Shown here: positions 1-63,168 of the stretch, one piece after another
How the letters are laid out: every line of letters starts with the position of its first letter
Numbering within the stretch: position 1 is the first letter of the stretch
Virus record (IMG/VR): IMGVR_UViG_3300046542_000291
Span: 62,001-126,000 of that record
Length of the DNA stretch: 64,000 nt
Reading direction: 5' to 3' (one strand)
The notes under the pieces: generated by a model
What the model saw: the letters and a program-made list of their open reading frames with translations, nothing else
Database searches by the model: none
Told to the model about the DNA's origin: nothing
Translations under genes and position numbers: made by a program

Positions 1-107
1 GTTGGTGTAGAAAAGGTACTTACGTGTTTGGCTATCCGATGAACCGTTGATCAGGTGGAACACGGTCAACAATCCAATGAACCCCCAAACCGAAAACAGT
101 TGATCAA

Positions 108-416
108 TCACTGCGGGCATTGAGCCTCCCAGACATCTTTCGGAAACCACAGAGTTGCGTAGTTCAGACCGATGGTCATGTGATGCCATCCCGCTTTCTG
201 GAAGCGATCACACACGAGTTCACGCAAGCCTTCATCAGGTACCATGCCTTCGGTCAGCGGGATGTGGATGGAACGCCACTCCCCTTCACGCATGATTCCA
301 GGATAGGCTTCGAGGTGGGTGTTAATGTAAGCAACCACTGCATCGAGGTTGTCGAGCTTGTTGCGTTTCAAGAAGTCCAGAGTGGACATCGGTTGGGTAT
401 GTGAATGATCAGCCAC
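108..416 (-). CDS. hypothetical protein, 'xGW' paralog family
   Basis: ORF in minus-strand gene train; LVCDRFQKAGWHHMTI resembles 409..681, 23650..23973 and the N-terminus of 16804..17343. Confidence 0.75.
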   Translation of the reverse strand: MADHSHTQPMSTLDFLKRNKLDNLDAVVAYINTHLEAYPGIMREGEWRSIHIPLTEGMVPDEGLRELVCDRFQKAGWHHMTIGLNYATLWFPKDVWEAQCPQ

Positions 417-16803: not shown

Positions 16804-17343
16804 TTAAGCGGTAACGGTAACAGTCTTGTCGACGCTGTACTTGCCAGCTTCTGCAACAGTGATAACCGAAGTACCAGCAGCAACACCGGTAACCAGACCG
16901 CTCGAAGAGACGGTGGCTTTGGCCGGGGTAGCCGAGGTGTAGGTTGGAGCAGGGGTGTACGCTTCGCCGTTCTTGGTAACGGTCAGGACGAGTTGTACAG
17001 TACCAGCAACAGCAACCGACGGAGTAGCCGGAGCCAGAGTGGCGACGTATACATCAACCTTTGGCTTCACCGAGAAGGCAACGACAACGCGTTTGGCTTC
17101 CTGGATGACTTCCACGTCTTTCCAGCCGGCTGCTTCGATGGCTTCTTTGAGGGAAGCCTGAGCAGCGGTGGTCAGCTGAACGCCATCGGCGATGACGCGC
17201 AGGTTCGGGTTGTCGATTTCGGCGTTGGTGACGTAGTCGACGGTAGTTTGTTTGGTCAGGTGAGCATTGATTGCCGCTTCGATAGGACCAACGTCCAGGG
17301 CGACGCGGGCAGCAATGGCATCAGCTTTGTTCAGTACAGCCAT
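16804..17343 (-). CDS. Ig-like (Big_2) domain protein, probable virion accessory protein
   Basis: TYTSATPAKATVSSSGLVTGVAAGTSVITV is a Big_2 signature; GAGGAG RBS; start moved to MAVLN. Confidence 0.85.
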   Translation of the reverse strand: MAVLNKADAIAARVALDVGPIEAAINAHLTKQTTVDYVTNAEIDNPNLRVIADGVQLTTAAQASLKEAIEAAGWKDVEVIQEAKRVVVAFSVKPKVDVYVATLAPATPSVAVAGTVQLVLTVTKNGEAYTPAPTYTSATPAKATVSSSGLVTGVAAGTSVITVAEAGKYSVDKTVTVTA

Positions 17344-17379
17344 GTTGAAACTCCTCAAATGATGCATTCACAACGAATA

Positions 17380-17446: not shown

Positions 17447-17473
17447 AAAAAGTCCCGATGGCTAGCATCGAGA
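17447..17473 (-). terminator. intrinsic terminator ending the IN[ST] cluster
   Basis: TCTCGATG-CTAGC-CATCGGGA then CTTTTT. Confidence 0.65.
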
Positions 17474-17534: not shown

Positions 17535-17882
17535 CTACGTGTTAATGGATTCAGCGAATGCTTTACCCAGACTACATAAGGTGATATCGGTATCGCTGAA
17601 GTCAGCGTTGATCATGACTTCACCACGGAGCATTACAATCTCGCGTGCGTCTATGACATCGAATACCGTTTGAGCACCTTCCTTCAATCCATCTGCATAA
17701 GCGGCTTTGGCCTCGTCACTTCCACGATCGGTGGATTCTACGGCCGCTTTATCAGTAAGGGAATCGACGACAGCCCCGAGCAACCGGGTTTGCTGTTCAA
17801 GGGACTCTTTCTTCTGTTCTTCTTCCAAGTCATTCAAGATCTTGATAGCCTCTTGAAGACCGTCTGACATCATGAGTGACAT
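17535..17882 (-). CDS. 'IN[ST]-tail' family protein
   Basis: ends SLGKAFAESINT. Confidence 0.85.
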   Translation of the reverse strand: MSLMMSDGLQEAIKILNDLEEEQKKESLEQQTRLLGAVVDSLTDKAAVESTDRGSDEAKAAYADGLKEGAQTVFDVIDAREIVMLRGEVMINADFSDTDITLCSLGKAFAESINT

Positions 17883-17899
17883 GATAATACCGTCCTTCT

Positions 17900-18253
17900 T
17901 TACGTGTTGATTGATTCAGCGAAAGCCTTCGCCAGGCTAATGCGGTGATGATCGTCAGTCGTGTAATCGATGTTGATCAGAGCCTCGCCCTTACCCAGAA
18001 TGATGTCCTGCTCGTCAATGACTTCCAGAGTTTTGATAACCCCTGCACGCAGACCCTCATTATAAGCTATCGCTTCGTATTGGTTAATGAAACCGCCGTT
18101 GTCGTGTTTCCCATCGACGAGTACATTTGACAGTGAACCCAGGAACGTTGTTTTCGCTGCTCCTGCTACAACCATCTGCTCACGCTCTACCCGTTCGAGG
18201 ATGTCCACGGCACGTTGAAGGTCAGCTTTGTTGATTGGGCGCATTAGGCTCAT
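17900..18253 (-). CDS. 'IN[ST]-tail' family protein
   Basis: ends SLAKAFAESINT; start moved to MSLMR (GGAG RBS). Confidence 0.85.
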   Translation of the reverse strand: MSLMRPINKADLQRAVDILERVEREQMVVAGAAKTTFLGSLSNVLVDGKHDNGGFINQYEAIAYNEGLRAGVIKTLEVIDEQDIILGKGEALINIDYTTDDHHRISLAKAFAESINT

Positions 18254-18382
18254 GGTGTTCGTCTCCATAGACAGGTAGGCAATACCTACACTTCTTTTTG
18301 TCGGAGCACACCCCAATGATTTCCATCAAGGGTGCACTTCTATTGAGACGGCTGTCGAGTTTATTCGGCAACCACGCCAGAC

Positions 18383-18643
18383 TCAGCTATTGATTGCGTC
18401 AGCGAACGCTTTGCTGAGTTTGACGCTCTCGTTGATTACACCAGCCGGGGAGACCAGTTGCAGGCCGACGGTGTCGATGACTTCCAGTACATGGTTGACA
18501 CCGAACAGGCTACCAGCAACAAAAGCCGCTTTGTCGTGGTCGCCGTTGTTGTCTGCAGCCGATTCAGTTACAACGCCAACAGCGGCGATGAAAGCAGCTT
18601 GATCGACAGCCTGGTCTTCGGTAGTGGTGATTACGTCGTTCAT
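18383..18643 (-). CDS. 'IN[ST]-tail' family protein
   Basis: ends KLSKAFADAINS; AGGAG RBS. Confidence 0.85.
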   Translation of the reverse strand: MNDVITTTEDQAVDQAAFIAAVGVVTESAADNNGDHDKAAFVAGSLFGVNHVLEVIDTVGLQLVSPAGVINESVKLSKAFADAINS

Positions 18644-18708
18644 GCGGTAAAACTCCTGGGTACTACTGCTAATGGCCTCTCTCGGTAAAATCCGGAGAGT
18701 GATTTGTT

Positions 18709-19194
18709 TTACGTATTGATTGCGTCAGCCCAGCATTGGCCGAGACTGATGAGCGTTTCGTCGTCGTTGTAATCCACGTTGATTGGGGTTTCCCCATCCA
18801 TCGTAGTTACAATGAGTTTTCGTTTGTCGAGTGCGTTGAACACTACACCCGCGCCTTCTTTCAGACCGGCTTTGAAGGCGACGTACGCTTCCGGGTTGCC
18901 TTGAAAGAACGTCCCGGTATTGCCTTTTTCTTGAAGATCTTCGATGACCTGCGTCATCAACCGCGTTCGTTCAACACCTGTGGTTTCGTTGTAAGCTGTT
19001 TCAAGATCACGGAGCTTCTGCTCTATGCGCTTATGCTCATCCGATTTTTCAACAACAACCGTCATCGTTACCTCCGGCTCTGGTTGTATCACGCCTTGCA
19101 TGAGTTGAATGTTAGCCCAGGTTGCCCCGAGCAGTTCTGCGATTGGAAAAGGGGCCGGGGTAGCCGGAACCAAATCCGAACAACTGTAGTTCAT
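18709..19194 (-). CDS. 'IN[ST]-tail' family protein
   Basis: ends SLGQCWADAINT; ATGA-coupled start at 19194. Confidence 0.85.
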   Translation of the reverse strand: MNYSCSDLVPATPAPFPIAELLGATWANIQLMQGVIQPEPEVTMTVVVEKSDEHKRIEQKLRDLETAYNETTGVERTRLMTQVIEDLQEKGNTGTFFQGNPEAYVAFKAGLKEGAGVVFNALDKRKLIVTTMDGETPINVDYNDDETLISLGQCWADAINT

Positions 19195-19682
19195 GTATTG
19201 ATGTCCTCCCACAGATTACTAATTATCCCCCAAACCGGATTATGGTAATCATCGACCAAGTCAAGGTGACCCTGTAGGATTGTTACTGTGTCCGAGATAG
19301 ATGTCTGAATACTTTCCTCGACCAGTGGCATAACCATGGCGTGGAGTTCTTTAGGCAACTGATCCTGGACAAATGTCGCTTGTGACTTGAAGAGGTCTTG
19401 TAACTCATCCCGTATAGGTCCTAAGACCGGTGACACACTTTCGTATGCATACCACGGGGCACTGCCGTCGGACGGGGGAGGTTCTACGCCTAGTTTTTCA
19501 TAGGCCACCCGAATTGCCGGGTCAAGCCACTCATCTGGTTCGAGGTCCTCATCGGGCTCTACCATTACGTGCTCATCCCACGGCAAATCTTCATCACCAA
19601 CGTCGTCTTCAAAGTCCCGACGAAAGTCCTCCTCGTCATCCATGGCATTGCCAAGCATGATCCCATCCAACGACATGTTCAT
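19191..19682 (-). CDS. 'IN[ST]-tail' family protein with acidic N-terminus
   Basis: ends IISNLWEDINT; D/E-rich N-terminus. Confidence 0.85.
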   Translation of the reverse strand: MNMSLDGIMLGNAMDDEEDFRRDFEDDVGDEDLPWDEHVMVEPDEDLEPDEWLDPAIRVAYEKLGVEPPPSDGSAPWYAYESVSPVLGPIRDELQDLFKSQATFVQDQLPKELHAMVMPLVEESIQTSISDTVTILQGHLDLVDDYHNPVWGIISNLWEDINT

Positions 19683-19984
19683 GAATTAATCGCCTCTACA
19701 AACGCGTCTGCGATGTCTTCGAGGAATGGGAAGCAACCCATATCCCCAGGCGATATAAACGCCAGCTGACAGCTGGCCTCTATCGTACTGCAGGTTCCGA
19801 TTACAGCAGAGTGGATGGCGTCTTGTGCACACTCCTTCACCCATTTGGTAGCATCATCGTTGATGTCCCAAAGAGCGCAGATGCGGTCATTGTTGATGAA
19901 CTGTTCCACCGCAGCAGATGCTACGCCTTGCAGTTCACTAACCAAGTCTTTCTTGCCTTGGGCGAGAATTTCATTTTCCATCAT
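19679..19984 (-). CDS. 'IN[ST]-tail' family protein
   Basis: ends DIADAFVEAINS. Confidence 0.85.
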   Translation of the reverse strand: MMENEILAQGKKDLVSELQGVASAAVEQFINNDRICALWDINDDATKWVKECAQDAIHSAVIGTCSTIEASCQLAFISPGDMGCFPFLEDIADAFVEAINS

Positions 19985-19993
19985 TCACCTCTA

Positions 19994-20017
19994 GAGTATC
20001 ACTCTGATAGGTATTTG
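19994..20017 (-). promoter_or_regulatory. possible middle promoter (AAAnTAC-N11-ATACT)
   Basis: same two-box spacing at 22449-22473 and 28162-28187. Confidence 0.35.
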
Positions 20018-20018
20018 T

Positions 20019-20291
20019 TTACAGGGTCAATAGTGGCCCCTTACCGTTGTGGATAGTAATCCCACCTTCACTGAGTTCTACCCGGTTACGTTCCAACCAA
20101 TCCAGGGCATGTTGCACGCCCTGCTTGATCCCTTCGGCAACATCACCATTGGGATCGGGTACTTTGGGCTGTGGTAAAGCCCGCAGTTCGTTTAGCAACG
20201 CTGAACGGCGATTAGATGTTGGTGTCTTTACAGTCACCAATCCATGCGCTTCCAGCGTTGCCAGAAATGGATCATCTTCAACATCCTTCAC
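20019..20291 (-). CDS. tail-less relative of the IN[ST] family
   Basis: core AEGIKQGVQHALDWLE matches family core ADGLKEGAQTVFDVID; no IN[ST] tail. Confidence 0.7.
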   Translation of the reverse strand: MKDVEDDPFLATLEAHGLVTVKTPTSNRRSALLNELRALPQPKVPDPNGDVAEGIKQGVQHALDWLERNRVELSEGGITIHNGKGPLLTL

Positions 20292-20625
20292 GGAGCGCTA
20301 CTCCCGTCACGACTTGAATGAACATCTCCTTGCGTTCCCGTTCGTCCGTTAAAGGACCAACGTAAAACACCAAGTGAGGTTGTCCGGTAAAGTCAGGCTG
20401 CATGTATTCAGTGTACGCAATCCCTGCAGCCACTAAGTGATGCCGACGACGATTGGCTGTGCGGTTAGGGCACATGTCTTCATCGGCCAGCATATAGAAG
20501 CTGTGCTCTCCATAAGAGAACTTCCCTTCCCCCTCACAGGGTTCGGTTGGAGGCAATCGCCACCAATCCTGTTTAACAGAGCCGTCGTTAACGACCCCCA
20601 TGTATCCGACTGAGTTCAATGGCAT
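20278..20625 (-). CDS. hypothetical protein
   Basis: ORF in gene train. Confidence 0.7.
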   Translation of the reverse strand: MPLNSVGYMGVVNDGSVKQDWWRLPPTEPCEGEGKFSYGEHSFYMLADEDMCPNRTANRRRHHLVAAGIAYTEYMQPDFTGQPHLVFYVGPLTDERERKEMFIQVVTGVALREGC

Positions 20626-21145
20626 TGGCCCGTGTTTCCTTTTTCAGCATGTGGTTACTTGAAACCCGCAGATGGTAATGCAACCCACCGTTAACCCAGG
20701 AAGAGATCTTGTCGTCAAACCCAAACGAGTTCAGGACTTGCTCCGCCAATTCGGCATCCACGTAGAACCACACCTGGGCTATCCCTTGTGGAGTCGACCA
20801 GATAATCGAGTTCTCACCGTCGATGACTGTATAACCCGCCACGTGATTACCAGCTACGTAATCTTGACACCACTGGGCAATCAACATTGGTAACTTCGAT
20901 GGTGGGTGGTTTGGATGACGGGGAATGTCACAGGCAGGACCCATGTACGTGTAGTACGTACCATCCGTCAATTGACCATTGGCTTGGTCAAAAATACCAC
21001 GACCTTTCAGTTCACGGATCTTACGGAGACCATCCTCTTTAGTTCGGTAGAGGTATACCGTTCCAGTCATCGGTGACGAGTCGGTAACAGTGACTTGGGT
21101 CAACTGCTCTACTTCGTTCCGAATAGCGATCGCCTGTAGGATCAC
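20588..21145 (-). CDS. hypothetical protein
   Basis: AAGGA RBS, GTG start. Confidence 0.75.
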   Translation of the reverse strand: MILQAIAIRNEVEQLTQVTVTDSSPMTGTVYLYRTKEDGLRKIRELKGRGIFDQANGQLTDGTYYTYMGPACDIPRHPNHPPSKLPMLIAQWCQDYVAGNHVAGYTVIDGENSIIWSTPQGIAQVWFYVDAELAEQVLNSFGFDDKISSWVNGGLHYHLRVSSNHMLKKETRANAIELSRIHGGR

Positions 21146-21176
21146 AGTAGCTTCCTTTTATAGTAGACGGCATAGA

Positions 21177-21196
21177 GCTACTCCCGAAGGAGCAGC
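21177..21196 (-). terminator. cUUCGg hairpin terminator
   Basis: GCTGCTCCTTCGGGAGTAGC. Confidence 0.75.
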
Positions 21197-21208
21197 ACTA
21201 CACGTGGA

Positions 21209-22069
21209 TCAGTTGCCGCCGTTGAAGACTTTGTTGCTCATGCCGGGGGTACCGAACGCTTGGTACGGTGCGAACACCACGTTCTTGTTCTCCGCCATCA
21301 GAGCTTGAACTTTCAGCGCTTCGTACGCCAGCAGATTCGGGCTGATACCCGCCGCCGTGATTTCGTTTTGATCGCGCAGAGTGCGAGCAACAGTCAGATC
21401 GATTTCACGTTGTGCTTGAGCCAGCTTCAGCGAGTTTTCACGCTTGACCATTTCAATGGCCTGCTGGTTTTCTTCGGTCTTGATCGCCAGTTCACGTTCG
21501 GACTGTTTCTCGATCGCCTGCGTGATCACGTCCGGATACTTCAGATTGGCCAGGGTAACGTTGGAGACTTCCAGAGGAGAGTTCGCCATCGCTTCTTTCA
21601 GCTTGATCTGAAGATCTTTGTTGATCTGATCGAAGTTGGTACCGACGTCTTCGGTGCGATATTTTCCAACGACAGAGCGAGCCACGGTTTGAACCATGTC
21701 ACGGCCGTAGACACCGTACACCTGTTGCAGCGATACCAGGTTGTCTTGCACCTTGATGTCGTTGAACATGGAGTTGATGGTCTTGTCACCACCGCCGATA
21801 CGAGTACGGAAACGGATCTCGAACTGGAGATCCATCCGATCGAGCATCTTCACCCGCATCGTTTCCGAAACGGTTTGCGTCGACGTATCGAGCAGAACCA
21901 GTTCTTCACGCATGCCGATGGTGTACTTGCCGGTTTGCTTCACTTCGGTCGAGTAGCCATCAGGCGACAGGATTTTGCCGAGGTGTGCAGGGGGAACGGT
22001 CACGCGGTTGCAACCAGCGACTGCCAGCAGGCACAGCGAAACGATCAGCGCTTTGATTCCGTACTTCAT
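21209..22069 (-). CDS. SPFH/band-7 (prohibitin-like) lipoprotein
   Basis: lipobox LAVAGC; VTVPPAHLG...VARSVVGKY...LEVSNVTLANLKYP...AIE plus coiled coil. Confidence 0.85.
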   Translation of the reverse strand: MKYGIKALIVSLCLLAVAGCNRVTVPPAHLGKILSPDGYSTEVKQTGKYTIGMREELVLLDTSTQTVSETMRVKMLDRMDLQFEIRFRTRIGGGDKTINSMFNDIKVQDNLVSLQQVYGVYGRDMVQTVARSVVGKYRTEDVGTNFDQINKDLQIKLKEAMANSPLEVSNVTLANLKYPDVITQAIEKQSERELAIKTEENQQAIEMVKRENSLKLAQAQREIDLTVARTLRDQNEITAAGISPNLLAYEALKVQALMAENKNVVFAPYQAFGTPGMSNKVFNGGN

Positions 22070-22410
22070 TTAGCATTTTCCTTAACAGCGTTTTCGAGGG
22101 TTTTCTTGAAGCTTTCTTCCGCAGAAGCTTTGTTGGTACCGGTGGTAGCAGACGCCTTTGGTTCAGGCACTGTGTAATCCGGAGCATCAAAGCTTGCCCG
22201 AGGCAGAGAACTTTGCTTGTGACCGATGTTGACGTTCCAGGCAACCAGTACGGCCAGCGCAATCACCGAAATCCATACCCGCTGAGGCTTACCCAGCTGG
22301 ACGATTTTGTTCTTGGTGAAGATGAGCCAACCACTGACCGCCAGGGTAAGTACCAGGTCAATAACGAACTTAACCGGGCTACCGGAGAAGTACATTGCGA
22401 AGAGATCCAT
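22066..22410 (-). CDS. 2-TM membrane protein coupled to the SPFH gene
   Basis: two hydrophobic segments; 4-nt overlap. Confidence 0.75.
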   Translation of the reverse strand: MDLFAMYFSGSPVKFVIDLVLTLAVSGWLIFTKNKIVQLGKPQRVWISVIALAVLVAWNVNIGHKQSSLPRASFDAPDYTVPEPKASATTGTNKASAEESFKKTLENAVKENAK

Positions 22411-22473
22411 GGGATTCCTTAGAGTGTGATGTCAGAGGGCTAGTAACACAGTATGACTAAGCCCAGTATTTTG

Positions 22474-22695
22474 TTACCGTAAAGCTTTTGCCGTAATGAA
22501 CCTTACATTTTTGGTCCTGGCCATGAAACCTTTTACCCGGTCAGCCATAGCCCGTATTTCTTCCTTGGAGGGCTCACATGCTCTCTTTGGCAGAAAGGCG
22601 CTGTCAGGGTAGTCCACAATCACAAAACCGTTCACAATGCTTACAGGGCAGTTACCGAGCAACATAGGCCACCTATGAGTTAATGGAAGCAGCAA
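22474..22695 (-). CDS. hypothetical protein
   Basis: fills gap in gene train; start uncertain. Confidence 0.5.
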   Translation of the reverse strand: MLLPLTHRWPMLLGNCPVSIVNGFVIVDYPDSAFLPKRACEPSKEEIRAMADRVKGFMARTKNVRFITAKALR

Positions 22696-22942
22696 ACGCT
22701 TCCGAGATCAGGCCGCCATCACGAATGATGCCTTCGTTAGCCAGGGTATCCACGGCAGTCCACATGGCCAGACCGATGACGTTGGTCACGATGTTCTCCA
22801 CCCGCTTTTGTACTTCTGGATCATCGAAGCGGAAATGGCACCGGCTGTCTGTGGCGTAGTTCTTAACCAGGTGATCTTTTGCCTTGGTCAATTGCTCAAC
22901 CATTTTAGCACTGTCGTCAACTGGTTCATCGTTGTCGTGCAT
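22673..22942 (-). CDS. 'IN[ST]-tail' family protein
   Basis: ends LISEAFAASINS; start moved to MHDND. Confidence 0.8.
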   Translation of the reverse strand: MHDNDEPVDDSAKMVEQLTKAKDHLVKNYATDSRCHFRFDDPEVQKRVENIVTNVIGLAMWTAVDTLANEGIIRDGGLISEAFAASINS

Positions 22943-22952
22943 GTCGTTCCCC

Positions 22953-23312
22953 TTAGGAATTAACCATTCGGAAGTGTTCGCACAGATTGCCCGCGATACT
23001 GGCGTTCTCTTCAACGAACGGGAGCCAGTTACCACCAGCTTCGATCGCTTCCTGTTTTTCAGTTTCGCCCACATCGGGCATCATGTTGAAGCCTGGGCAA
23101 TTGGGATGATCGCCATCCAGGATCATGAAGATCCGGTCGCACATGCCCGTAGCTACCGCCAGTGCCAGCTCCGCCGAATCATCGATGGCCTGAATGGCCG
23201 GAGAAGCCAACAGGTCGTCGCGTTCTGCTTTCACCGTATCAATGAACAGTTCGGTGACTTCACTGAAAGCAGCTTCACGGGATTGACCATTACCTTCGAA
23301 GTACACAGTCAT
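22953..23312 (-). CDS. 'IN[ST]-tail' family protein (VNS)
   Basis: ends NLCEHFRMVNS; ATGA-coupled start. Confidence 0.8.
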   Translation of the reverse strand: MTVYFEGNGQSREAAFSEVTELFIDTVKAERDDLLASPAIQAIDDSAELALAVATGMCDRIFMILDGDHPNCPGFNMMPDVGETEKQEAIEAGGNWLPFVEENASIAGNLCEHFRMVNS

Positions 23313-23647
23313 GGTTTTGCTCCTTCGGTCCACTGTTTGAAGTAGTCCGAGTTATTGCCTTGGACATCCCGGAGTTTACCGAGAAGGCGTAAATCGCTAA
23401 TGCCACCCAGCGAGTTACGGCAGGAAGCATGGTGCTGTTCTTGTAACACCGCTTTCCGCTCCAAGGTAACGTAGGTAATGGTTACCTTACCGTTGGTGCC
23501 AGTGCGGTTAAGCCCATAAGCCACGTAACCTTCTGCTTCAAGCGCTTTGTTAATAAGTGCATTGAACTCGGTGGTTGCATCGGACATGGTTACATGGTAG
23601 TAACCATCCTCCACCGGGAATTCTTTGTACGAGTCGATGTTAAGCAT
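23309..23647 (-). CDS. hypothetical protein, 'xGW/Y' family
   Basis: INKALEAEGYV motif. Confidence 0.75.
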   Translation of the reverse strand: MLNIDSYKEFPVEDGYYHVTMSDATTEFNALINKALEAEGYVAYGLNRTGTNGKVTITYVTLERKAVLQEQHHASCRNSLGGISDLRLLGKLRDVQGNNSDYFKQWTEGAKP

Positions 23648-34240: not shown

Positions 34241-35641
34241 TTATTCTTCGTCGTCTTTCTTCTTTTCCAAATACTGAGTACTTACAGCTTTAAAGCTGAA
34301 CACTCGGTCGGTGCACTTGAACACCAGTCCTTCGCGGTAAGTTTTCTTCGGTTGTTTCGGATCGACATTGAACGCACGCGGACCTTCAGCCATCAGGAGA
34401 ATATCCTGAATAGTAGTGCCCACCGGAATAACAAACTTCTCATGCATGACCGGGACGTAAGGAAGGCCGATGGCAGCACATACACCACGAGCTTCTTCCG
34501 GCAACAACTCCTGGCTACCATTGCGGTATACGCTGTAGACATGGTATTCAACATCTTCCACGCCTTCGAAGCCAGACTGGATATCTGGACCGATCAGCTC
34601 GCCTTGAACAGTGATGTATTCACCTGTCTCTTCCTGGTACGCCTTCAGCTTCTCAACCACCTTGTTCTTGGTGACGTAGCGGGTGAAGTTCCGGGAGGTG
34701 CTGTCGCCAATACCGGTGTTGGCTTTCCATTCAGGGACGTGAAGGTTGTTCATACGGAACGCCCATTTGCCATCTTCGTCCTTGAAGAACCACGACTTCG
34801 GTTTTAGGAAGTTGCGGTTGCGCGCCAGGAGGGTACCGATCCAGTAACGGATCTGATCTGGTTTGGACCATTCCTCGTCACCGATAACCAACTCGTAGTT
34901 ACGCGAGCAAACGCCAGTACGAACACCACCATCATCCAGGCAGAATACCGTCATGGAGCTACCGTCGAGTTTCCAGGTAACTTCGAATTCAGTGCCTTCC
35001 GCCTTTGCCGCTTCGAACGCGACTGTCTTGTTCTGGATACGATCCTGATCAGACTTGAGCAGTTGCTTCGGCCATGGCAGGAGAGCATTACCCACGTTAC
35101 CGAGGATCTTACGTACCAGACGCATGTACCAGCCAGAACCAGCTGCAGCCTGTTGCGCCGGCGACATGAGTGGCTTGGCTGCAAACTTCAGGATGCCCAG
35201 CTCCAACGTCATGTTGGTTTCAGCTGGAAGGTCTTTGTATTTCTCTGGGAGTGGTACAACCAACCCCTGGGCCAGCTCCTTACGAAGACGGAGCGTGCGC
35301 AAACGGTGATAAGCCTTACCGTTGATCAGGCGGTTATCGGAACGGCGTGCCTCGAGGAACCCGAACAGTGGGTTATCGATTGGCAACAGCGAGTCGATCT
35401 CGCAGTACACCACACGGTCACCCTTCTTGTATTCGTCCAGCTTGACCACGCACTGCCAGCCGCCGATGATTGCCAGAGACAAGGCATCAGCATTTGGATG
35501 TTTGATCACGTCGTCAAGTACGACGATACGCGCCAGTTTGCGGTCGGTTTCAACCACCCCGTTCCCCTCACGGATTGGTTTGAGTTCAGCAGCTACATCG
35601 GGGGTAGCGGTTGCGACTTCGATCTTTTCTACGACAGACAT
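34241..35641 (-). CDS. ATP-dependent RNA ligase, DRB0094/Rnl5-like
   Basis: N-terminal OB-type HPNADAL...GW...YCEIDS; motif I TWKLDGSS; CSRN; VQGELIGP; EGLVFK; SFKAVS. Confidence 0.9.
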   Translation of the reverse strand: MSVVEKIEVATATPDVAAELKPIREGNGVVETDRKLARIVVLDDVIKHPNADALSLAIIGGWQCVVKLDEYKKGDRVVYCEIDSLLPIDNPLFGFLEARRSDNRLINGKAYHRLRTLRLRKELAQGLVVPLPEKYKDLPAETNMTLELGILKFAAKPLMSPAQQAAAGSGWYMRLVRKILGNVGNALLPWPKQLLKSDQDRIQNKTVAFEAAKAEGTEFEVTWKLDGSSMTVFCLDDGGVRTGVCSRNYELVIGDEEWSKPDQIRYWIGTLLARNRNFLKPKSWFFKDEDGKWAFRMNNLHVPEWKANTGIGDSTSRNFTRYVTKNKVVEKLKAYQEETGEYITVQGELIGPDIQSGFEGVEDVEYHVYSVYRNGSQELLPEEARGVCAAIGLPYVPVMHEKFVIPVGTTIQDILLMAEGPRAFNVDPKQPKKTYREGLVFKCTDRVFSFKAVSTQYLEKKKDDEE

Positions 35642-35657
35642 GTTTCTTCCTTAGGTC

Positions 35658-35906
35658 TTATTGCAAAGGTTTGCAGGTTACAGTGATTTTTGCCATACGG
35701 CTCGACAGTGCGCCACCATCGACTCTCGATTCAACGTAGTCTTTGGTTTCTTTGACGAGGTAAGGCTTCATGCCGTATGTCTCTACGACTTGTTCAATTG
35801 CGGCTGGACACGTGTTGGCATCTGACAGTTCTGTGACTGTTGGTGCACCACCAGGTCCTGCGCCTGTATTGAACGCAAATGCGATAACAAGTAACGCTTT
35901 CATCAT
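35658..35906 (-). CDS. small exported 2-Cys protein
   Basis: hydrophobic N-terminus, TCPAA...TCKP. Confidence 0.7.
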   Translation of the reverse strand: MMKALLVIAFAFNTGAGPGGAPTVTELSDANTCPAAIEQVVETYGMKPYLVKETKDYVESRVDGGALSSRMAKITVTCKPLQ

Positions 35907-37186
35907 TACCCCTTAACGCAGAGAACCTGCTTCAGCGTGTGGACGATCTCGACGAGTTCAGCCTGAGCTGCCATCACGTCTTCGATGTTCTTGTACGCCT
36001 TCGGGGTCTCATCGAGCACACCTTCATCTTTACGGCATTCAACACCAGCCGTATCGCGGATGTGATCTTCGATGGTGAAGTTACGGTTAGCCGCTTTACG
36101 CGACATCACACGACCAGCACCATGCGAACAGGAGCAGAACGACTCACGGTTGCCCTTACCACGAACGATGAACGACTTCGCACCCATCGACCCTGGGATA
36201 ATACCCAGAGTACCTTCCTCGGCGTTTACGGCACCTTTACGGGTAACCAGAACGTTCTCACCGAAGTGACGTTCCTGGGACACGTAGTTGTGGTGGCAAT
36301 TGATTGCCGCCATGTCGGTGTCGATTGGCAGGTTCAGGGTTTTGTGGATCGCCCCCAGAACAGCCTTCATCATGAGCGTACGATTCAGTGCTGCGAAACG
36401 CTGTGCCCACGATACCGCCTGCAGGTAGTCGTCGTAGTACTTGGTACCGTGTGGCAGGTAAGCCAGATCTTGGTCTGGTAGATGGATAAAGAAACGACCC
36501 ATCTCTTCCTTTGCCTTGTTGATGAAGTACTGACCGATCGCATTCCCGATACCACGGGAACCAGAGTGCAGCATTACCCACACACGCTGTTCCTCGTCCA
36601 AGCACAGCTCAACGAAGTGGTTACCGGTACCGAGAGTACCCACATGGTTCCACGCCCGTTGTGCAGCCTTGGTGAGCTTCGGGTGTTTCTCAACGATTTG
36701 GTTCAGTTGCGTTCGCAACTTCTCCGCTTCAGCAGCGATCATGATGTCCTTGTTATCGAACACAGTCACCTTACCGAAAGCACCACGGTCGTTTGGACCA
36801 CCGTTGTCAGTACGGCCATGTGGTACTACCGCTTCGATAGCTGCCCGCAGATGGCCGAGGCTATCTGGCAGTTGGTCTGCACCGAACGTCAAGCGACGAG
36901 CGGCCATTCCGCACCCGATATCGACCCCCACCGCAGCGGGAATGATTGCACCTTTAGTAGCAATGACGCTACCGACAGTGGCACCCAACCCGAAGTGTAC
37001 GTCCGGCATTACTGCAACGTGCGAATGGATGAACGGCAACGACGCCAGGTTCTTCAACTGCTTGACTGCGGTCTCTTCGACTGGAACCCCCACGGTCCAG
37101 CCTTTAATCGGCTTCGAACCCGGTTCAGGTTCGCCACCAATGATTTCGAAAGACTTATCTTGCTGCTGGGATTTCTTTTGTTTCAT
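35906..37186 (-). CDS. rtcB: RtcB RNA ligase (3'-phosphate/5'-OH)
   Basis: MPDVH, GVDIGCG, GTLGTGNHF, HSGSRG, HHNY, SHGAGR, DETPKAYK. Confidence 0.97.
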   Translation of the reverse strand: MKQKKSQQQDKSFEIIGGEPEPGSKPIKGWTVGVPVEETAVKQLKNLASLPFIHSHVAVMPDVHFGLGATVGSVIATKGAIIPAAVGVDIGCGMAARRLTFGADQLPDSLGHLRAAIEAVVPHGRTDNGGPNDRGAFGKVTVFDNKDIMIAAEAEKLRTQLNQIVEKHPKLTKAAQRAWNHVGTLGTGNHFVELCLDEEQRVWVMLHSGSRGIGNAIGQYFINKAKEEMGRFFIHLPDQDLAYLPHGTKYYDDYLQAVSWAQRFAALNRTLMMKAVLGAIHKTLNLPIDTDMAAINCHHNYVSQERHFGENVLVTRKGAVNAEEGTLGIIPGSMGAKSFIVRGKGNRESFCSCSHGAGRVMSRKAANRNFTIEDHIRDTAGVECRKDEGVLDETPKAYKNIEDVMAAQAELVEIVHTLKQVLCVKG

Positions 37187-39250: not shown

Positions 39251-41032
39251 TTATGCAGCTTCGCGCAGGGTTGCACGAACTTCTTCGAAGGTCACTTCGT
39301 TCGGGAACGTGCCGTCTTTGTAGATCGGACGCAGTTCACCCGAGTGAGTGTCGAGGTCAGCGATTTCGAACTTCTGCTCTTGGAGCAGCTCAAAGTCACC
39401 GGCTTCGTTCTTCACAACCTTCAGGAAGCCCTTGGCCGACTTCTTGTTGGTTTCGCCTTCGGTCTTCGGCGCCTTGAACAGCTCAACGAACACGTCGTCC
39501 ACTTGAACGGCGGTAGCCTTGATGGCGTAGCCGAAGGTGTCACGAGTGTTGTGCTGATAGGTGTACGAACCGATACCCAGAACCCAGTTGCACGAAGCGA
39601 AGCCTTTCTTCATCAGGCGACGCATGATTTCCTGGGTACGTTCCACAGTGATCGAATCACCGTAGATCAGGCCAACACGTTCGTGCAGCACTTTGAAGCC
39701 CTTGTCGGTCATGGTGCCACCGAAAGTGTTCCACAGGCATTCCACCGCACCGATCTGTTCGGCGTTCAGTTCTACCGGAGCCCACAGGTAGCCCAGAGCC
39801 GTGTAGTACTTCTCGGCGTCTTCAGCACTGATCGGATTTTCGTAGCGGGTTGCTTTGTACGTCATGCCGTTCAACAGAACGTACTCGACGTCTTTCGCTT
39901 TGCCGTTGTTGACCAGTTCGCTGAATTCCAGCGAGTTGTGAACTTCCACACCGCAGATGACTTCAACAGGATCACCGGAATCCGGACGGAACACCACTTT
40001 GGCCAGGCCGTTGGCGTCTGGTTGACGAGCCAGGATTTCTTCCTTCAGGGAAGGGGCAACAATGGTCAGGACACCCCAGAAGTCGAAGCTGTCGCAGACC
40101 AGGCTGATGATGCCAGTAGGACACTTGACGGTAATGGCATCCAGGATGAACTGACGCTCGGCCAGCAGTTGCGCTTTGCCGTATGCATCGGGATCGAGGT
40201 CACCACCAGTCAGGCCTTTTTCCAGCAGCCACTTGGTCATGTTGTACAGGATGTTCGAAGTAGCAACGGCGTGTTCGGTAGCACGCACCGATACAGCCAG
40301 GAACTCGACGTCGCTGTTGGCGAAGTACATGTCTTCGGCGTAGTCGATGGCCGGCAGGGTATCGGTACCCACGAAGCTGGTCAGGTGACCGGCGCCAGTA
40401 CGAGCAGCATCTTCAGGACCGGACAGGCCACGGAAGGCGAAGTCATGCCCTTGCAACGCAACGAAGTCACGAGGCGAACCAGTCAGGTCAGCGAAGTGTT
40501 CCAGGATGCGACGGTATTCGTAAGCGATGGTGGCGTTGCAGACCATTTTCCAGATCAGCGACGACATCAGGGTTTCCAGGTAGTTCACTACCCAGAAGAA
40601 TTCCGGTACGGTGTTGTAGATCACGTAGCCCGGAACGTTCATGTTCAGGCGAGAGCCTTCCGGTACCGACAGGATGGTAACCGGTAAGTAACCCAGGTCA
40701 TGCAGTGCTGCCATGGCTTCGATGTCAACCATACCTTCACCGAGGTAGTTCTTCATGCGGCGAGCGTAGCGACGGATCACTTGCTCTTTCGGCTTGCTGA
40801 AGAACGAATCGTGCCACAGGCCGTGAACTTCACGCATCACGCCTTGGATACCGAACCAGACGACTTTGCTATCCCAGAGGTAGGACTGGGACTTGCTGCC
40901 CTTGAACAGACGGTCTGCACGTGGAGTGCCGTTACCGTAGGCGAAGTTGGTGCCGTTCGGGTACAGAGGGCCGTGACCCATTTTGTAACCGTCTGCTGCA
41001 GTCGGGCCAAACAGTTTGAAAGAAGTGCTCAT
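39251..41032 (-). CDS. NAMPT-family phosphoribosyltransferase (probable NARP1 Namat)
   Basis: ADGYKMGH, HDFAFRG, GTDT, ATEH, RPDSGDP, IYGDSIT, GIGSYTYQ, TRDT, KKSAKG; start moved to MSTSF. Confidence 0.9.
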   Translation of the reverse strand: MSTSFKLFGPTAADGYKMGHGPLYPNGTNFAYGNGTPRADRLFKGSKSQSYLWDSKVVWFGIQGVMREVHGLWHDSFFSKPKEQVIRRYARRMKNYLGEGMVDIEAMAALHDLGYLPVTILSVPEGSRLNMNVPGYVIYNTVPEFFWVVNYLETLMSSLIWKMVCNATIAYEYRRILEHFADLTGSPRDFVALQGHDFAFRGLSGPEDAARTGAGHLTSFVGTDTLPAIDYAEDMYFANSDVEFLAVSVRATEHAVATSNILYNMTKWLLEKGLTGGDLDPDAYGKAQLLAERQFILDAITVKCPTGIISLVCDSFDFWGVLTIVAPSLKEEILARQPDANGLAKVVFRPDSGDPVEVICGVEVHNSLEFSELVNNGKAKDVEYVLLNGMTYKATRYENPISAEDAEKYYTALGYLWAPVELNAEQIGAVECLWNTFGGTMTDKGFKVLHERVGLIYGDSITVERTQEIMRRLMKKGFASCNWVLGIGSYTYQHNTRDTFGYAIKATAVQVDDVFVELFKAPKTEGETNKKSAKGFLKVVKNEAGDFELLQEQKFEIADLDTHSGELRPIYKDGTFPNEVTFEEVRATLREAA

Positions 41033-41045
41033 TACTTTGTTTTCC

Positions 41046-41921
41046 TTACGCATTGATCCAGGTGAGTTTGTTATCGACAACACCGTCTGGGCGAGTACTG
41101 CCCTGTGCTGTCGGATGGAACGAGTTGGTGGTGTAGACGTGGTCGTACTTTTCAGTAACCAGGTCGAAACCGTACGAGAAGATCCCGTGCGTTACCAACA
41201 GTTCCAATCGTGCTGGATTATGCTTGCGGATTTCTTCAGCCAGTTGGATGAAGGTCCGTCCACCATCACAGATGTCGTCACAGACCAGCAGTCGTTTGCC
41301 AGTTACATCGGCATCGAACTTGGTCTTGGTGATTTCCATCGTTTCCAGGTCACGCTCTTTAGTAGCCGTGATGTAACCAGCGCAGCCCAGGTGAGCAGCC
41401 AACGCTTTCACTTTCTTGACAGCCCCTGCATCAGGAGCCACCAGCCAGGTATCGTGCAGTTCGTTTGCCGTAGCATCCAACATGTGCACGATGTCAGCCT
41501 GGGTCTTGACGATCACGCGGTTGATCAACGCCGGCGTAGTGTCGCTGTGCGGGTCCAAAATGGTCACACTGACGAACTCACAGAGGTTGATCAACTTCGC
41601 TGCTACCGCAATACCCAACGACTCCCCGGGGTTACACACGCGGTCCTGCCGGGCGTAAGGGACATAAGGGATATATGCGCTTACCGGTACGTCGGGACGA
41701 ATGCGACGGATCGCATCGGTAACGTGCAGTAAAGCGAGGAAGTCAGTTGGGGTACGGAGGTTGGCCATGACTTGAATGTCCATGCAACCGCGGATTTTGT
41801 TGTGGAACTCTTTCGGAATAAGTGGGTTAACTTCCCCACCTTTGAACGTGCTCACGTCAACGATAGTCTGCGCCACTCCCCAGTGGTCGCCATTGCCGCG
41901 TCGGATACTTAAACGAATCAT
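41046..41921 (-). CDS. ribose-phosphate pyrophosphokinase family (probable NARP1 Adps)
   Basis: FKGGE, PYVPYARQDR, DPHS, APDAGA, DDICDGGRTF, VTHGIFS. Confidence 0.9.
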   Translation of the reverse strand: MIRLSIRRGNGDHWGVAQTIVDVSTFKGGEVNPLIPKEFHNKIRGCMDIQVMANLRTPTDFLALLHVTDAIRRIRPDVPVSAYIPYVPYARQDRVCNPGESLGIAVAAKLINLCEFVSVTILDPHSDTTPALINRVIVKTQADIVHMLDATANELHDTWLVAPDAGAVKKVKALAAHLGCAGYITATKERDLETMEITKTKFDADVTGKRLLVCDDICDGGRTFIQLAEEIRKHNPARLELLVTHGIFSYGFDLVTEKYDHVYTTNSFHPTAQGSTRPDGVVDNKLTWINA

Positions 41922-44000: not shown

Positions 44001-45344
44001 TTAGATCCCGTTGGCACCACACGACTTCAGTACGGACTGAAGGGTGGCATTGGTGGTTGACCCGCGTTCAAAGATTGCAATGCGGAAGTGTTTGCTCAGC
44101 TCGGTGAGTACATCATCCAGCTTGGTAGCCGGATAGAGATTGTTGCCACCGTCTGGGAGTTGCTGCATGAACACGGCGTCCTCTTTGATCCCCACGCCGC
44201 CGACCAGATAATTACAGATCTGTTGCACGAGGGCCGTTTTACCGGAGTGAGGAGCCGCGACGATTGCGATGTTGGTGACGCCATGTGCGAGGTCGCGGAC
44301 GGGGGCTGGATAGACGCGCATGGCTTCGTCCAAAGGGAGTGGGCGTGCCGGATCTACCGAGAATCGCTGAACGATACGGTGCTCACTCACAATGTACTCT
44401 TTGGTGGGAACATAGTTCTTCACCGATTCCATCAGAGCATCACGACCCATCAAGCCAATGTCAGCTTGCAGATCCTGGGCCACTACTTCAAAACCAGCGT
44501 CGCTCAGCATGTGTGCCAGCTTCGCCGACAAAGCCGTTTTACCCGAACCCGTTTCACCGGTGATGATGATAGCCACTTGTTGCTTTTCTTTTGGCTTCTC
44601 TTCAACCACACGTCGCGCCACTGGAGCAGCCAACGCACGGATTTGCATCCGACTGACCTGAACAAGGCCAGCCGACATGACGAACGGATCGCTACCACTG
44701 TAGAGCAGGATCAAATCACCCGCTTCCATCTTGCGCCCACGGGGCTCACCACCTGGATGACTCGCCGGTGGATGCCCACCATTGAAGTACCACACACCTT
44801 CCCATTGTGTCAACGTTTTCGAATCGACCCAGTTGGTAAATGTAGCCACAGCGTTGGTAGTAACACCAATACCCACATGGCCTTCTTCGTCGTTGAAGTA
44901 GACACCTTCATAGGAATGCTCCAGTGCGTCAGTGATTTTGATAGCCGTGTGATTAGCACGCTTGTCTTCTGGCGAAGTGATCGAGAACTTGGCGTTAGCC
45001 CTTGAACGACTGTAGTGTTCTGGATCACCGTCGGGCTCACTGAGGATCAACACATCCCCAACATAAACCTGGATGTTTCGGGTGGACCCCTGACTGTTGA
45101 TGAGGCGGGCGTATACGCTGAACTCACGCCCGCCATGGAGGGCAAAGAACTCCAGACGATAGACTTTCTGCAACACAGCAAACAGCGCTTCAGCCGCAGC
45201 GCTGGTGTATGCCAGTTCCACCACCGCTTTACCCTCAAACACCGAGACGGCTTTGATGAGTGCCCCTTCCATCGTTACAGCTTTGGCGTCAGATGGACGA
45301 TGCTGTTCGATGCGGATACACGGAAACTTAATTGGGTTTTGCAT
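44001..45344 (-). CDS. multidomain protein with two short P-loop domains
   Basis: GETGSGKT and AAPHSGKT. Confidence 0.8.
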   Translation of the reverse strand: MQNPIKFPCIRIEQHRPSDAKAVTMEGALIKAVSVFEGKAVVELAYTSAAAEALFAVLQKVYRLEFFALHGGREFSVYARLINSQGSTRNIQVYVGDVLILSEPDGDPEHYSRSRANAKFSITSPEDKRANHTAIKITDALEHSYEGVYFNDEEGHVGIGVTTNAVATFTNWVDSKTLTQWEGVWYFNGGHPPASHPGGEPRGRKMEAGDLILLYSGSDPFVMSAGLVQVSRMQIRALAAPVARRVVEEKPKEKQQVAIIITGETGSGKTALSAKLAHMLSDAGFEVVAQDLQADIGLMGRDALMESVKNYVPTKEYIVSEHRIVQRFSVDPARPLPLDEAMRVYPAPVRDLAHGVTNIAIVAAPHSGKTALVQQICNYLVGGVGIKEDAVFMQQLPDGGNNLYPATKLDDVLTELSKHFRIAIFERGSTTNATLQSVLKSCGANGI

Positions 45345-62316: not shown

Positions 62317-63168
62317 CTACAGCTTAAGGATATCCTTGCTCACGACTCGTTGCCCATCGAACATAGCCGCTGTGACTGGTTCTGCACCTTCGTACATAAC
62401 GTCGGAGCGGTTTACCACGGTGGTGATCGGCGGCATGGCCAGGATCTTAACAATCGAACGCCGTACAACCAGATCAGGATTACTGAAGTAGTTGTGCTTT
62501 GGTGGCAGCTCGCTGATCTCTTCTGGAGTGAACGGCCGAGTAACCGTAGACCGCTGGATGTACGTGCCCCGTTTAAATGCTACGGGGAAACGATTCCAGT
62601 TGATACCCTTGTCCATGAGCATGTCTTTGATCTGTTTGCCGTTCTTCCGGTAGATACCACTGTGTCCGAACTCAGCGTGGCCGACCATCTGAAGAGAGTT
62701 CTTGGTAGCATCCCATTCACGCCAAACAAACGTGTTGGTCCCTTCTGCCCGATTGGGTACATTGTAAACCCGGGCATCGAACTCAGGATCACGGTCTGCG
62801 TATTCCGGCATGAACTTGAGCACTTCTTGATAGAAGATACGGGTAGCCTTAGCCGCCAACCGAGAGATCATCTTCGACACACGGCCATCGAACCACACTT
62901 GATACTTCAGTGAGGTGGAGTGCCAGGTGAGAGTGATCTCATCAGACTGGGTAAAGCCCATTGAAGCCCCAGTCTCCTCTACCAACTTACGGCAAGTCTC
63001 AATCATGCATTGCTGCATCATCAAGTCGTAAGGTCGGTCCATACCACGGGTGAACTTACTGAAGCCCGCGCCGTCAATACGGGCCACGATTGGTAATAAC
63101 GGCATGAAGCGCTGTTGCAGGAAGTCCTGCTCATACATCTTCATCCGATCGCCGAGTTTGTCAGTCAT
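62317..63168 (-). CDS. tRNA(His) guanylyltransferase / Thg1-like 3'-5' polymerase
   Basis: RMKMYE, ARIDGAGFSKFT, QSDEI, FDGRVSK, FDAR, WREWDATKNS, KRGT. Confidence 0.93.
   Translation of the reverse strand: MTDKLGDRMKMYEQDFLQQRFMPLLPIVARIDGAGFSKFTRGMDRPYDLMMQQCMIETCRKLVEETGASMGFTQSDEITLTWHSTSLKYQVWFDGRVSKMISRLAAKATRIFYQEVLKFMPEYADRDPEFDARVYNVPNRAEGTNTFVWREWDATKNSLQMVGHAEFGHSGIYRKNGKQIKDMLMDKGINWNRFPVAFKRGTYIQRSTVTRPFTPEEISELPPKHNYFSNPDLVVRRSIVKILAMPPITTVVNRSDVMYEGAEPVTAAMFDGQRVVSKDILKL

Follow-up and report, generated by a model that had tools for sequence, protein, structure and literature searches.

A lineage-specific family of small proteins with a conserved C-terminal tail in Pseudomonas phiKZ-like jumbo phages

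The phiKZ-like phages provide the model of the phage nucleus and are under development against Pseudomonas. Approximately 70% of the phiKZ genes are dispensable in the laboratory, most of them being without known function, and the arm carrying orf184–304, which includes genes 257 and 258, is largely non-essential and probably host-interacting (10.1101/2025.11.23.690004). The products of these two genes belong to phrog_27353 (gp257) and phrog_11061 (gp258), both of which are clusters of hypothetical proteins. The phrog_11061 group (phiKZ gp258, PhiPA3 gp306 and 201phi2-1 gp369) is the closest described counterpart of the locus reported here, a cluster of small minus-strand genes at nucleotides 17535–23312 of a 64,000 nucleotide stretch (the window; positions 62,001 to 126,000) of the 310,396 bp virus record IMGVR_UViG_3300046542_000291. 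Eight genes of this cluster (W1–W6, W8 and W9; Table 1) specify proteins that end in the same short C-terminal tail. One of them, W9, is like the phrog_11061 group in its full length, syntenic position, tail, size and charge; W1–W6 and W8 match no PHROG, and none of them matches phrog_11061 at E<=1. The eight tail genes are best explained as the expansion, at one locus, of a multigene family specific to the lineage of Pseudomonas phiKZ-like jumbo phages.

The tail was evaluated against every stop-to-stop open reading frame (ORF) of at least 50 amino acids in the window (n=563). Exactly eight of these end in [IV]N[ST] followed by the stop codon, all on the minus strand and within a span of 5.8 kb. 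The same tripeptide is present 48 times in 60,192 internal positions, which gives an expectation of 0.45 terminal cases (binomial P=2.6e-8). The ends are ..KAFAESINT (W1, W2), ..KAFADAINS (W3), ..QCWADAINT (W4), ..NLWEDINT (W5), ..DAFVEAINS (W6), ..EAFAASINS (W8) and ..EHFRMVNS (W9). Their last codons vary (ATT/ATC, AAC/AAT, ACG/ACA/AGC/TCA/TCC), the stop codons TAG, TAA and TGA are all used, and spacing to the next gene varies, with overlaps of 4 nt (ATGA) at one extreme and gaps of about 66 nt at the other. Among 47 tail-bearing relatives Val at position -3 is specified by all four of its codons, Ser at -2 by both AGY and TCN, and again there are three stops. Since codons and stops are degenerate and the intergenic spacing is variable, the constraint is on the peptide and not on the DNA. 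A DNA repeat or regulatory element behind the conserved ends was thereby ruled out; a repeat finder revealed 62–82% similarity over 39 nt among the four closest genes, as paralogues would show. Selection targets the protein terminus of these genes. A preliminary description of this DNA had proposed both a shared tail on eight genes and selection on the protein end rather than a DNA repeat, and it is borne out on both points.

Residues 9–126 of W9 (in ORF 22953-23333) align with positions 1–123 of the 123-position phrog_11061 profile (E=3.7e-22). Using tblastn, homologs with 31–46% identity were found in 63 Pseudomonas jumbo-phage records, including phiKZ (gp258), PhiPA3 (gp306), 201phi2-1 (gp369), Phabio and the PA1C/PS119XW group (PA1C QBX32466). 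Because its homologs sit in these records, the window phage is classified with the phiKZ-like jumbo phages, for which the phage nucleus is known; its host is likely to be Pseudomonas, and nucleus formation by the phage itself is assumed. Matches by tblastn to the gp258-like and gp376-like groups were confined to Pseudomonas phages. Searches of the phage records with W2 and W6 gave no match, and no close relative of W6 was found. Word-indexed protein searches with W9 and with subfamily A, which comprises W1–W4, returned the window's own proteins only, and a scan of JGI metagenomes gave nothing for subfamily A. When 1.84 billion representatives were scanned by HMMER with a profile built from the C-terminal halves of the eight proteins, the only additions were a spurious repeat protein and P0008, the sole outside relative of subfamily A, which is encoded on a Logan metagenome contig. 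No near-identical DNA to the window was found among GenBank phages.

The tail, predicted to be an amphipathic helix and the most strongly conserved element of the family, has the consensus L(-11), [Y/L/F](-7), [W/F/A](-6), [E/D/N](-5), x, [V/I](-3), [N/S](-2), [N/S/T](-1), and family membership was scored with the motif [YFLW][WFA][DE..]x[VI][NS][NSTG] at the exact C-terminus, which all eight window genes possess. In ten loci this motif is exactly terminal in 47 of 561 coding-strand ORFs, versus 0.67 expected from its internal frequency. The tails of PA1C are ..DYFKLVNS, ..TYFESVNT, ..YHYDRVNT, ..SLFEGVNT, ..QYFKHVNQ and ..SYWATVNN, and those of PhiPA3 ..EYWNLISS, ..KYWEDLTSG, ..QLFNDISN, ..ELWDKVSG, ..AFWNAVSN and ..SFFDEISN. 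Seven tail genes are present in Phabio; in 201phi2-1 the exact tail is found on gp369, gp376, gp377 and gp378, with gp370 extended and gp372 truncated. The uncultured contig L013 carries six by the strict motif, plus variant ends ..EEVAS and ..EAVGS, and contig L015 carries five. phiKZ and PA7 have gp258 (..YFIFVNRG) and gp257. The contig with P0008 carries five tail genes (..QSINS, ..EQVNS, ..ETVNS, ..SHINS and ..DLVNS) which flank an SPFH gene and precede an Ig-like gene, matching the layout of the window, where the order is W9, W8, SPFH, W7–W1 and a Big_2 protein. A block running from a gp258-like gene to an Ig-like or virion-protein gene is also the shared layout in PA1C, PhiPA3, contig L006 and 201phi2-1. 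The known members are phiKZ gp257/gp258, PhiPA3 gp306–313, 201phi2-1 gp369–378 and proteins of Phabio, PA1C and uncultured phages.

The survey of jumbo phages for copy number that the preliminary description had called for gave 1–2 tail genes per phage (phiKZ) to about ten, with PhiPA3, 201phi2-1, Phabio, PA1C and others contributing, and at least eight in the window; the family is kept, and has repeatedly been expanded, in every Pseudomonas phiKZ-like lineage examined. The label of a candidate new system, applied before any database search, needs dividing: no described family fits, but the family is not unique to the window phage, as the match of W9 to phrog_11061 demonstrates. The family is undescribed and lies outside any characterised family, and it is in this sense, not in that of a demonstrated mechanism, that it is new. 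The literature searched, that on paralogues in the Chimalliviridae included, contained no description of the tail motif, of the link between subfamilies or of the family. One subgroup of relatives carries a functional label in PHROGs: 201phi2-1 gp370 (L014:10372-10644) matches positions 122–216 of phrog_3008, annotated as "DNA methyltransferase" (E=2.5e-21), and PhiPA3 gp307, L013:9607-9861 and L010:10366-10611 belong with it. This label is either a mis-annotation or reflects a domain that is fused to another module in some phages.

Does the family consist of related proteins, or of one tail on unrelated bodies? By BLAST the members fall into subfamily A (W1–W4 and P0008), W9 with the gp258 group, W5 with PhiPA3 gp308, the gp376-like group, and two singletons, W6 and W8. 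Subfamily A shows 30–39% identity, with G65 and G69 invariant. The core helix AY..GL+EG...V.D.ID, which the preliminary description had considered common to the members, is solid in these four proteins, weak in W7 and a mere resemblance of pattern in W5, W6, W8 and W9; its observation that the bodies are variable holds across the members. Profile-profile comparison of the small subfamily alignments aligned the 13-residue tail only. For this reason an iterative hidden Markov model (HMM) free of the tail was employed, with neighbouring ORFs as internal controls: the last 12 residues were cut from the 561 ORFs, and the model was seeded with gp258-like and gp376-like bodies. It recovered 34 ORFs at E<1e-3, and a further 12 tail-bearing ORFs, W6 and W5 among them, outranked the first non-member. 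The E-values for window proteins were 3e-21 (W9), 0.036 (W6), 0.14 (W5) and 0.82 (W8), the last three lying ahead of or among the first non-members. Since the members are recovered without their tails, the bodies of most of the family are, by this comparison, homologous. The elements common to the members in alignment A7 are an N-terminal helix (F-I-x-A-V-K-x-K-R-D-E), a core helix (A-[IV]-D-x-A-I-x-G-x-L-x-V-[VL]-[ED]) and, after a variable insert, the tail. With a profile of the subfamily A body, 8 of the 11 best non-self matches were family members or tail variants, and common descent of W1–W4 with the rest of the family is likely.

The tail-less W7, located inside the cluster, retains the core-helix pattern. 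Its similarity to subfamily A is weak by two methods (BLASTP E=0.007 to W1; HMM E=0.25, the third-best non-self match), which agrees with its earlier designation as a tail-less copy to the extent that it is a plausible, and probably a true, paralogue.

The position of the stop codon was examined in the 34 homologs detected independently of the tail. Two carry one residue beyond the motif (phiKZ/PA7 gp258, ..VNRG; PhiPA3 gp307, ..LTSG) and five carry three to eight (phiKZ gp257, ..DDISRIMR; PhiPA3 gp309, ..QEISDEQ; 201phi2-1 gp370, ..IVNDPNVVMHES; a homolog of gp370 in L015; and L013_10402). The remaining 27 homologs, including the variants ..EEVAS and ..EAVGS, stop at the canonical position. 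One 201phi2-1 ORF ends two residues short (..KYWDDV). Another 32 database relatives, retrieved with alignment A7, have the canonical end in all cases but PhiPA3 gp307 (+1), and every member has S, T, N or G as its final residue. The preliminary description had named common C-terminal extensions of homologs as a finding that would count against it, and this check comes out mostly in its favour: 27/34 of these homologs and all 24 aligned gp376-like proteins share the same stop position, and the 7/34 with additional residues are the exception. Because genuine homologs carry one to eight residues past the motif, a free carboxylate at a fixed place is not obligatory.

These observations bear directly on the mechanism originally put forward, in which the last 7–12 residues are a free docking peptide, its free carboxylate and N-[ST] end being read in trans by a hub or by a neighbouring member, giving rise to hetero-oligomers or filaments. 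The exact stop in 8/8 window genes, 27/34 homologs and 24/24 gp376-like proteins would suit such a peptide, as would the invariance of its polar residues, the ATGA coupling of W6, W5 and W4, and the puncta formed by a GFP fusion of PhiPA3 gp308. The true homologs with extensions and the 201phi2-1 ORF lacking the last two residues argue otherwise, and among some 40 larger window proteins scanned there was no PDZ, TPR or protease-type reader. Structure prediction, described below, cuts both ways: the linker before the tail is of low confidence, which a free peptide would explain, but the tail helix itself has high local confidence in an AlphaFold2 monomer. Overall we consider a free docking peptide unlikely.

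The 24 gp376-like proteins show 40–96% pairwise identity (mean 59%), and S-T-L-Y-F-E-E-V is their longest conserved block, being invariant or nearly so with its polar residues included. This bears on a simpler account, namely that these are ordinary divergent paralogues in which the terminal helix is the best-kept element of a small fold and has no shared partner, the functions of the paralogues being unrelated or of no importance. Asn and Ser are common helix C-cap residues, and an amphipathic tail with an Asn/Ser cap is what such a fold would possess; extensions are tolerated, the genes are dispensable in phiKZ, and the gp258-like and gp376-like bodies are demonstrably homologous. Structural helices normally keep their hydrophobic pattern only, however, whereas here the presumably exposed S, T, E and E do not vary among sequences that average 59% identity. 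Between subfamilies the tail outlives every other part of the protein, and the family has been retained and repeatedly expanded in all Pseudomonas phiKZ-like lineages examined. We find ordinary divergence a doubtful explanation.

Family members contain 77–218 amino acids, and those of the window 86–167, with isoelectric points (pI) of 4.1–5.1; the value of 8.6 listed for W8 refers to an over-long 133-residue ORF and not to the 89-residue form. With a median pI of 4.3 the family stands apart from the remaining ORFs in its loci, whose median is 5.9 (P=4e-18). AlphaFold2 modelled W9 from an 8-sequence multiple sequence alignment (MSA) with a mean predicted local distance difference test (pLDDT) of 74.6 and a predicted template modelling score (pTM) of 0.63. 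The model comprises two short N-terminal strands, helices at residues 23–42 and 53–72 (pLDDT >90), a small strand and helix, a disordered segment at 100–112 (linker pLDDT <50) and a terminal helix at 117–125 with a pLDDT of about 85. The model of W1 (4-sequence MSA; pLDDT 63) contains helices at 7–25, 28–49 and 56–79 and a tail helix at 105–114, so that the two models have a common order of elements. A W9 tail helix packed on the fold fits the prediction better than a free docking peptide would.

Comparison with databases revealed little. Pfam contained no family at E<=0.01 for the window members or for ten relatives, PADLOC gave no match at E<=0.01 to the nine proteins or their SPFH neighbour, and hmmsearch of PDB sequences with three subfamily profiles found nothing below E=0.2; with the literature search, this upholds the earlier statement that no described family is recognisable. 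The database relatives are all "hypothetical proteins" devoid of Pfam domains. Foldseek of both models against the PDB gave best E-values of 1 or worse, the search with the weaker W1 model (pLDDT 63) being uninformative, as expected; a distant fold match could have escaped because neither model exceeds moderate confidence. In BFVD, Foldseek matched the W9 model to the Phabio orthologue and, weakly, to uncharacterised phage proteins, such as the 293-residue A0A1L7N105 of Ralstonia phage RP12 (E=5e-3, 23% identity). Both W9 and phiKZ gp257 show weak matches to phrog_29367, which has 293 positions, and the W9 fold may extend to Ralstonia jumbo phages within a larger protein. Hints of DUF2960, AgrD, DRE2_N and Mu Gam (Pfam/PHROG, E>=0.01) were dismissed as noise, and look-alikes in the ESM Atlas were uninformative, W1 matching pentapeptide-repeat proteins with scores of 0.6 and W9 matching unnamed clusters.

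Published data on relatives permit some assessment of location and importance. In PhiPA3, gp308, the homolog of W5, was detected together with gp313, a gp376-like protein, by miniTurboID mass spectrometry with the nuclear bait RecA, and as GFP fusions gp308 formed cytoplasmic puncta and gp313 was diffusely cytoplasmic (PMC10643120). In phiKZ, PHIKZ257 and PHIKZ258 tolerate 21/36 and 8/28 transposon insertions, respectively, in two data sets (10.1101/2025.11.23.690004). None of 201phi2-1 gp369–378 is annotated as a virion protein, while the neighbouring gp382 was found by virion mass spectrometry. One might imagine the tail to be an address tag sending diverse cargo to the capsid or inner body, the early infection vesicle or the phage nucleus, since the architecture recalls the internal-protein locus of T4 and both PhiPA3 proteins are labelled by the nuclear bait. 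The cytoplasmic fusions, which are neither nuclear nor shell-bound, speak against this and disfavour a nuclear import signal in particular. The missing virion annotation in 201phi2-1, next to gp382 which is in the virion, points the same way, and the tail contains no S/A/G-x-E site for a prohead protease, a motif that AFAES and YFEEV do not fit. An address tag appears very unlikely.

The extreme C-terminal position of the tail would also be appropriate for a degron, through which a host or phage protease or adaptor would remove the proteins at a set time during infection, and an SspB-like adaptor has been reported in the related Erwinia phage RAY. The polar ends (-INT, -VSN) are unlike LAA-type or the non-polar tail-specific-protease signals, however, the tail helix is predicted to be structured, and the window yielded no gene for a protease or adaptor. 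A degron is very improbable.

The reading we prefer, with a probability of about 40%, is a composite one, in which the proteins are built on a common scaffold that carries a variable insert, present an invariant core-plus-tail surface, and act as accessory host-takeover or counter-defence proteins. The scaffold would start with the N-terminal helix, continue with a core helix that has a face of small residues (A-I-x-G, or GxxxG in the case of subfamily A) and with an insert variable in both length and sequence, and finish with the terminal helix, which would fold back on the core helix and close the structure. Packing of the tail on the core helix is suggested by its hydrophobic face at -11, -7/-6 and -3 and the small-residue face of the core, by a tail confidence in AlphaFold2 exceeding that of the linker, and by the tolerance of short extensions. 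Core and terminal helix would together form the one invariant surface of the family, serving a common interaction, which may be self- or hetero-association or the binding of one shared phage or host partner; such a shared site is favoured by the invariance of the polar tail residues and by the persistence of the tail between subfamilies whose other parts have diverged. The variable insert and N-terminus would give each paralogue its own target. The proposed role, an accessory one in host takeover or counter-defence with the proteins behaving like acidic decoys or inhibitors, is suggested by the acidity of the proteins, their position in the accessory arm, their dispensability and their birth-and-death dynamics, and host variation would drive the gain and loss of copies.

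Several points weigh against this composite reading. The subfamily A body profile has no significant match to the gp258 or gp376 bodies, and the only part of subfamily A that hhalign joins to the other proteins is the GLKEGxxxVFxVID helix, which it pairs with their core helix (E=0.35), so that a common scaffold for W1–W4 rests on architecture, position, size, charge and the tail. Both models reach moderate confidence only (pLDDT 63 and 75), and packing of the tail in cis is read from pLDDT. The side of the GFP fusion in the PhiPA3 work is unstated, and a C-terminal tag would mask the tail. Counter-defence, finally, is proposed from context only. A related but improbable arrangement would make the tail a portable C-terminal "plug" that docks acidic effector bodies onto one conserved phage or host hub, the bodies being interchangeable specificity subunits whose copy number tracks host defences or targets.

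The features of the cluster are collected in Table 1; start sites were revised from Shine-Dalgarno sequences, public gene calls and orthologues, so that W2 agrees with the 117-residue public call P0002 and the mechanical W8 ORF (22673-23074) was judged over-long, while the start of W9 at 23312 agrees with the preliminary description. The start of W4 overlaps the stop of W5 (ATGA). In its N-terminal half W5 contains an extended low-complexity sequence of extreme acidity (..DDEEDFRRDFEDDVGDEDLPWDEH..EPDEDLEPDEW..), which precedes a conserved C-terminal part, and its homolog PhiPA3 gp308 (BLAST E=2e-11) ends in ..GITEQLFNDISN. The SPFH/Band_7 neighbour is kept in PA1C, where an SPFH gene lies at the equivalent place, and in contig L006, which has a Band_7 gene; PhiPA3 and 201phi2-1 apparently have no SPFH gene in the block examined. 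The Big_2 protein, which may be a head or tail decoration protein, is the positional counterpart of 201phi2-1 gp382, identified in the virion by mass spectrometry. PA1C (L001:6375-6875) and 201phi2-1 (gp374) have a putative acetyltransferase gene in among their tail genes, and an equivalent was not detected in the window cluster. The promoter-like site upstream of W9 and the hairpin downstream of W1 weakly suggest that the cluster is a single transcription unit; consensus promoter and terminator sites were not enriched over shuffled sequences.

Table 1. Tail genes, neighbouring genes and other features of the window
Feature	Coordinates	Strand	Remarks
W1	17535..17882	-	115 aa; pI 4.2; tail ..SLGKAFAESINT; subfamily A
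W2	17900..18253	-	117 aa; ATG at 18253, ORF reaches 18316; tail ..SLAKAFAESINT; subfamily A
W3	18383..18643	-	86 aa; tail ..KLSKAFADAINS; subfamily A, short form
W4	18709..19194	-	161 aa; ORF reaches 19212; tail ..SLGQCWADAINT; subfamily A
W5	19191..19682	-	163 aa; Asp/Glu-rich acidic N-terminal part; tail ..GIISNLWEDINT
W6	19679..19984	-	101 aa; tail ..DIADAFVEAINS; ATGA overlap with W5
W7	20019..20291	-	90 aa; ends ..ITIHNGKGPLLTL; core-helix pattern VAEGIKQGVQHALDWLE kept; probable tail-less paralogue (weak match)
W8	22673..22942	-	89 aa; ATG at 22942 after AAGGGGAA; tail ..GGLISEAFAASINS; public call P0007
W9	22953..23312	-	119 aa; ORF reaches 23333; tail ..NLCEHFRMVNS
SPFH/Band_7 protein	21209..22069	-	Non-member inside the cluster; phrog_200 "lipoprotein"
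Small hydrophobic membrane-like protein	22066..22410	-	phrog_32239; directly upstream of the SPFH gene, overlapping it
Big_2 Ig-like domain protein	16804-17367	-	Big_2 domain C-terminal; directly downstream of the cluster
Terminator-like hairpin, then promoter-like site	24596-24579, then 24562-24534	-	Consensus scan only
Terminator-like hairpin and T-run	17453..17473	-	Just downstream of W1; consensus scan only
RNA ligase, RtcB, Thg1-like tRNA-His guanylyltransferase, NAMPT and PRPP-synthetase-like genes	34241-37186, 39251-41921, 62317-63168	-	Coordinates given jointly
P-loop protein	44001-45344	-	447 aa
Thymidylate synthase	46219-47592	-	457 aa

The genes of the window are mostly small minus-strand orphans. 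Also encoded are an NAD-dependent DNA ligase, NAMPT, a PRPP-synthetase-like protein, RNA ligase, RtcB, a Thg1-like protein, thymidylate synthase and a dCTP-deaminase-like protein. RNA ligase, RtcB and the Thg1-like tRNA-His guanylyltransferase constitute an RNA-repair set, and NAMPT with the PRPP-synthetase-like protein an NAD+ salvage pair in the same arm. RNA-repair and NAD+ salvage modules are typically linked to the countering of tRNA-cleaving and NAD-depleting host defences. Thymidylate synthase aligns over its full length to only about 275 profile positions (phrog_160, 33–308), which implies large insertions like those of the long phiKZ gp235. In the P-loop protein, models of STAND/AAA-type NTPases match just residues ~250–297.

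Through this testable signature more than 40 orphan genes, drawn from six or more phage lineages, are brought together in a single family. Should the tail surface have one binding partner, one pull-down using a tail peptide could assign a function family-wide, and the variable inserts would represent a natural library of specificities. If the plug arrangement were correct, it would be a new organising principle for jumbo-phage accessory genes, with the tail peptide as a handle for the hub. Even if the tail is purely structural, the family marks the accessory arm and illustrates how a terminal helix can persist while the remainder of a rapidly evolving protein changes.

Among known systems with conserved terminal parts, the phiKZ inner-body paralogues gp92–97, gp153, gp162 and gp163 (PF12699) have a conserved C-terminal part and individually dispensable copies (10.1101/2025.11.23.690004). 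They are, however, large virion proteins processed by the head protease, and the tail proteins have no Pfam match at E<=0.01. The XVIPCD effectors of the Xanthomonas type IV secretion system likewise combine variable bodies with a conserved C-terminal module (10.64898/2026.08.23.746524). This is an analogy only, XVIPCD being a domain of about 120 residues that is read by VirD4 and is unrelated in sequence or structure to the tail family. Ligands of PDZ domains, substrates of tail-specific proteases and ssrA degrons need a hydrophobic, unextended end, whereas the tail described here terminates in S, T, N or G and is extended in 7 of the 34 homologs. The internal proteins of T4-like phages, some of which counter host defence, resemble the family in being small, tandem and polymorphic with one short terminal peptide. 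The T4 capsid-targeting peptide lies at the N-terminus, is a substrate of the prohead protease and packages the protein into the virion; the peptide of the present family lies at the C-terminus and is predicted to be helical, and relatives are cytoplasmic (PhiPA3) or not annotated as virion proteins (201phi2-1). The C-terminal peptide of SSB and clamp-binding motifs are, like the present tail, short acidic or aromatic ends that are better conserved than the rest of the protein. SSB-type tails are disordered and allow one protein to recruit many partners, whereas in this family many proteins share one tail, of different sequence and predicted to be helical.

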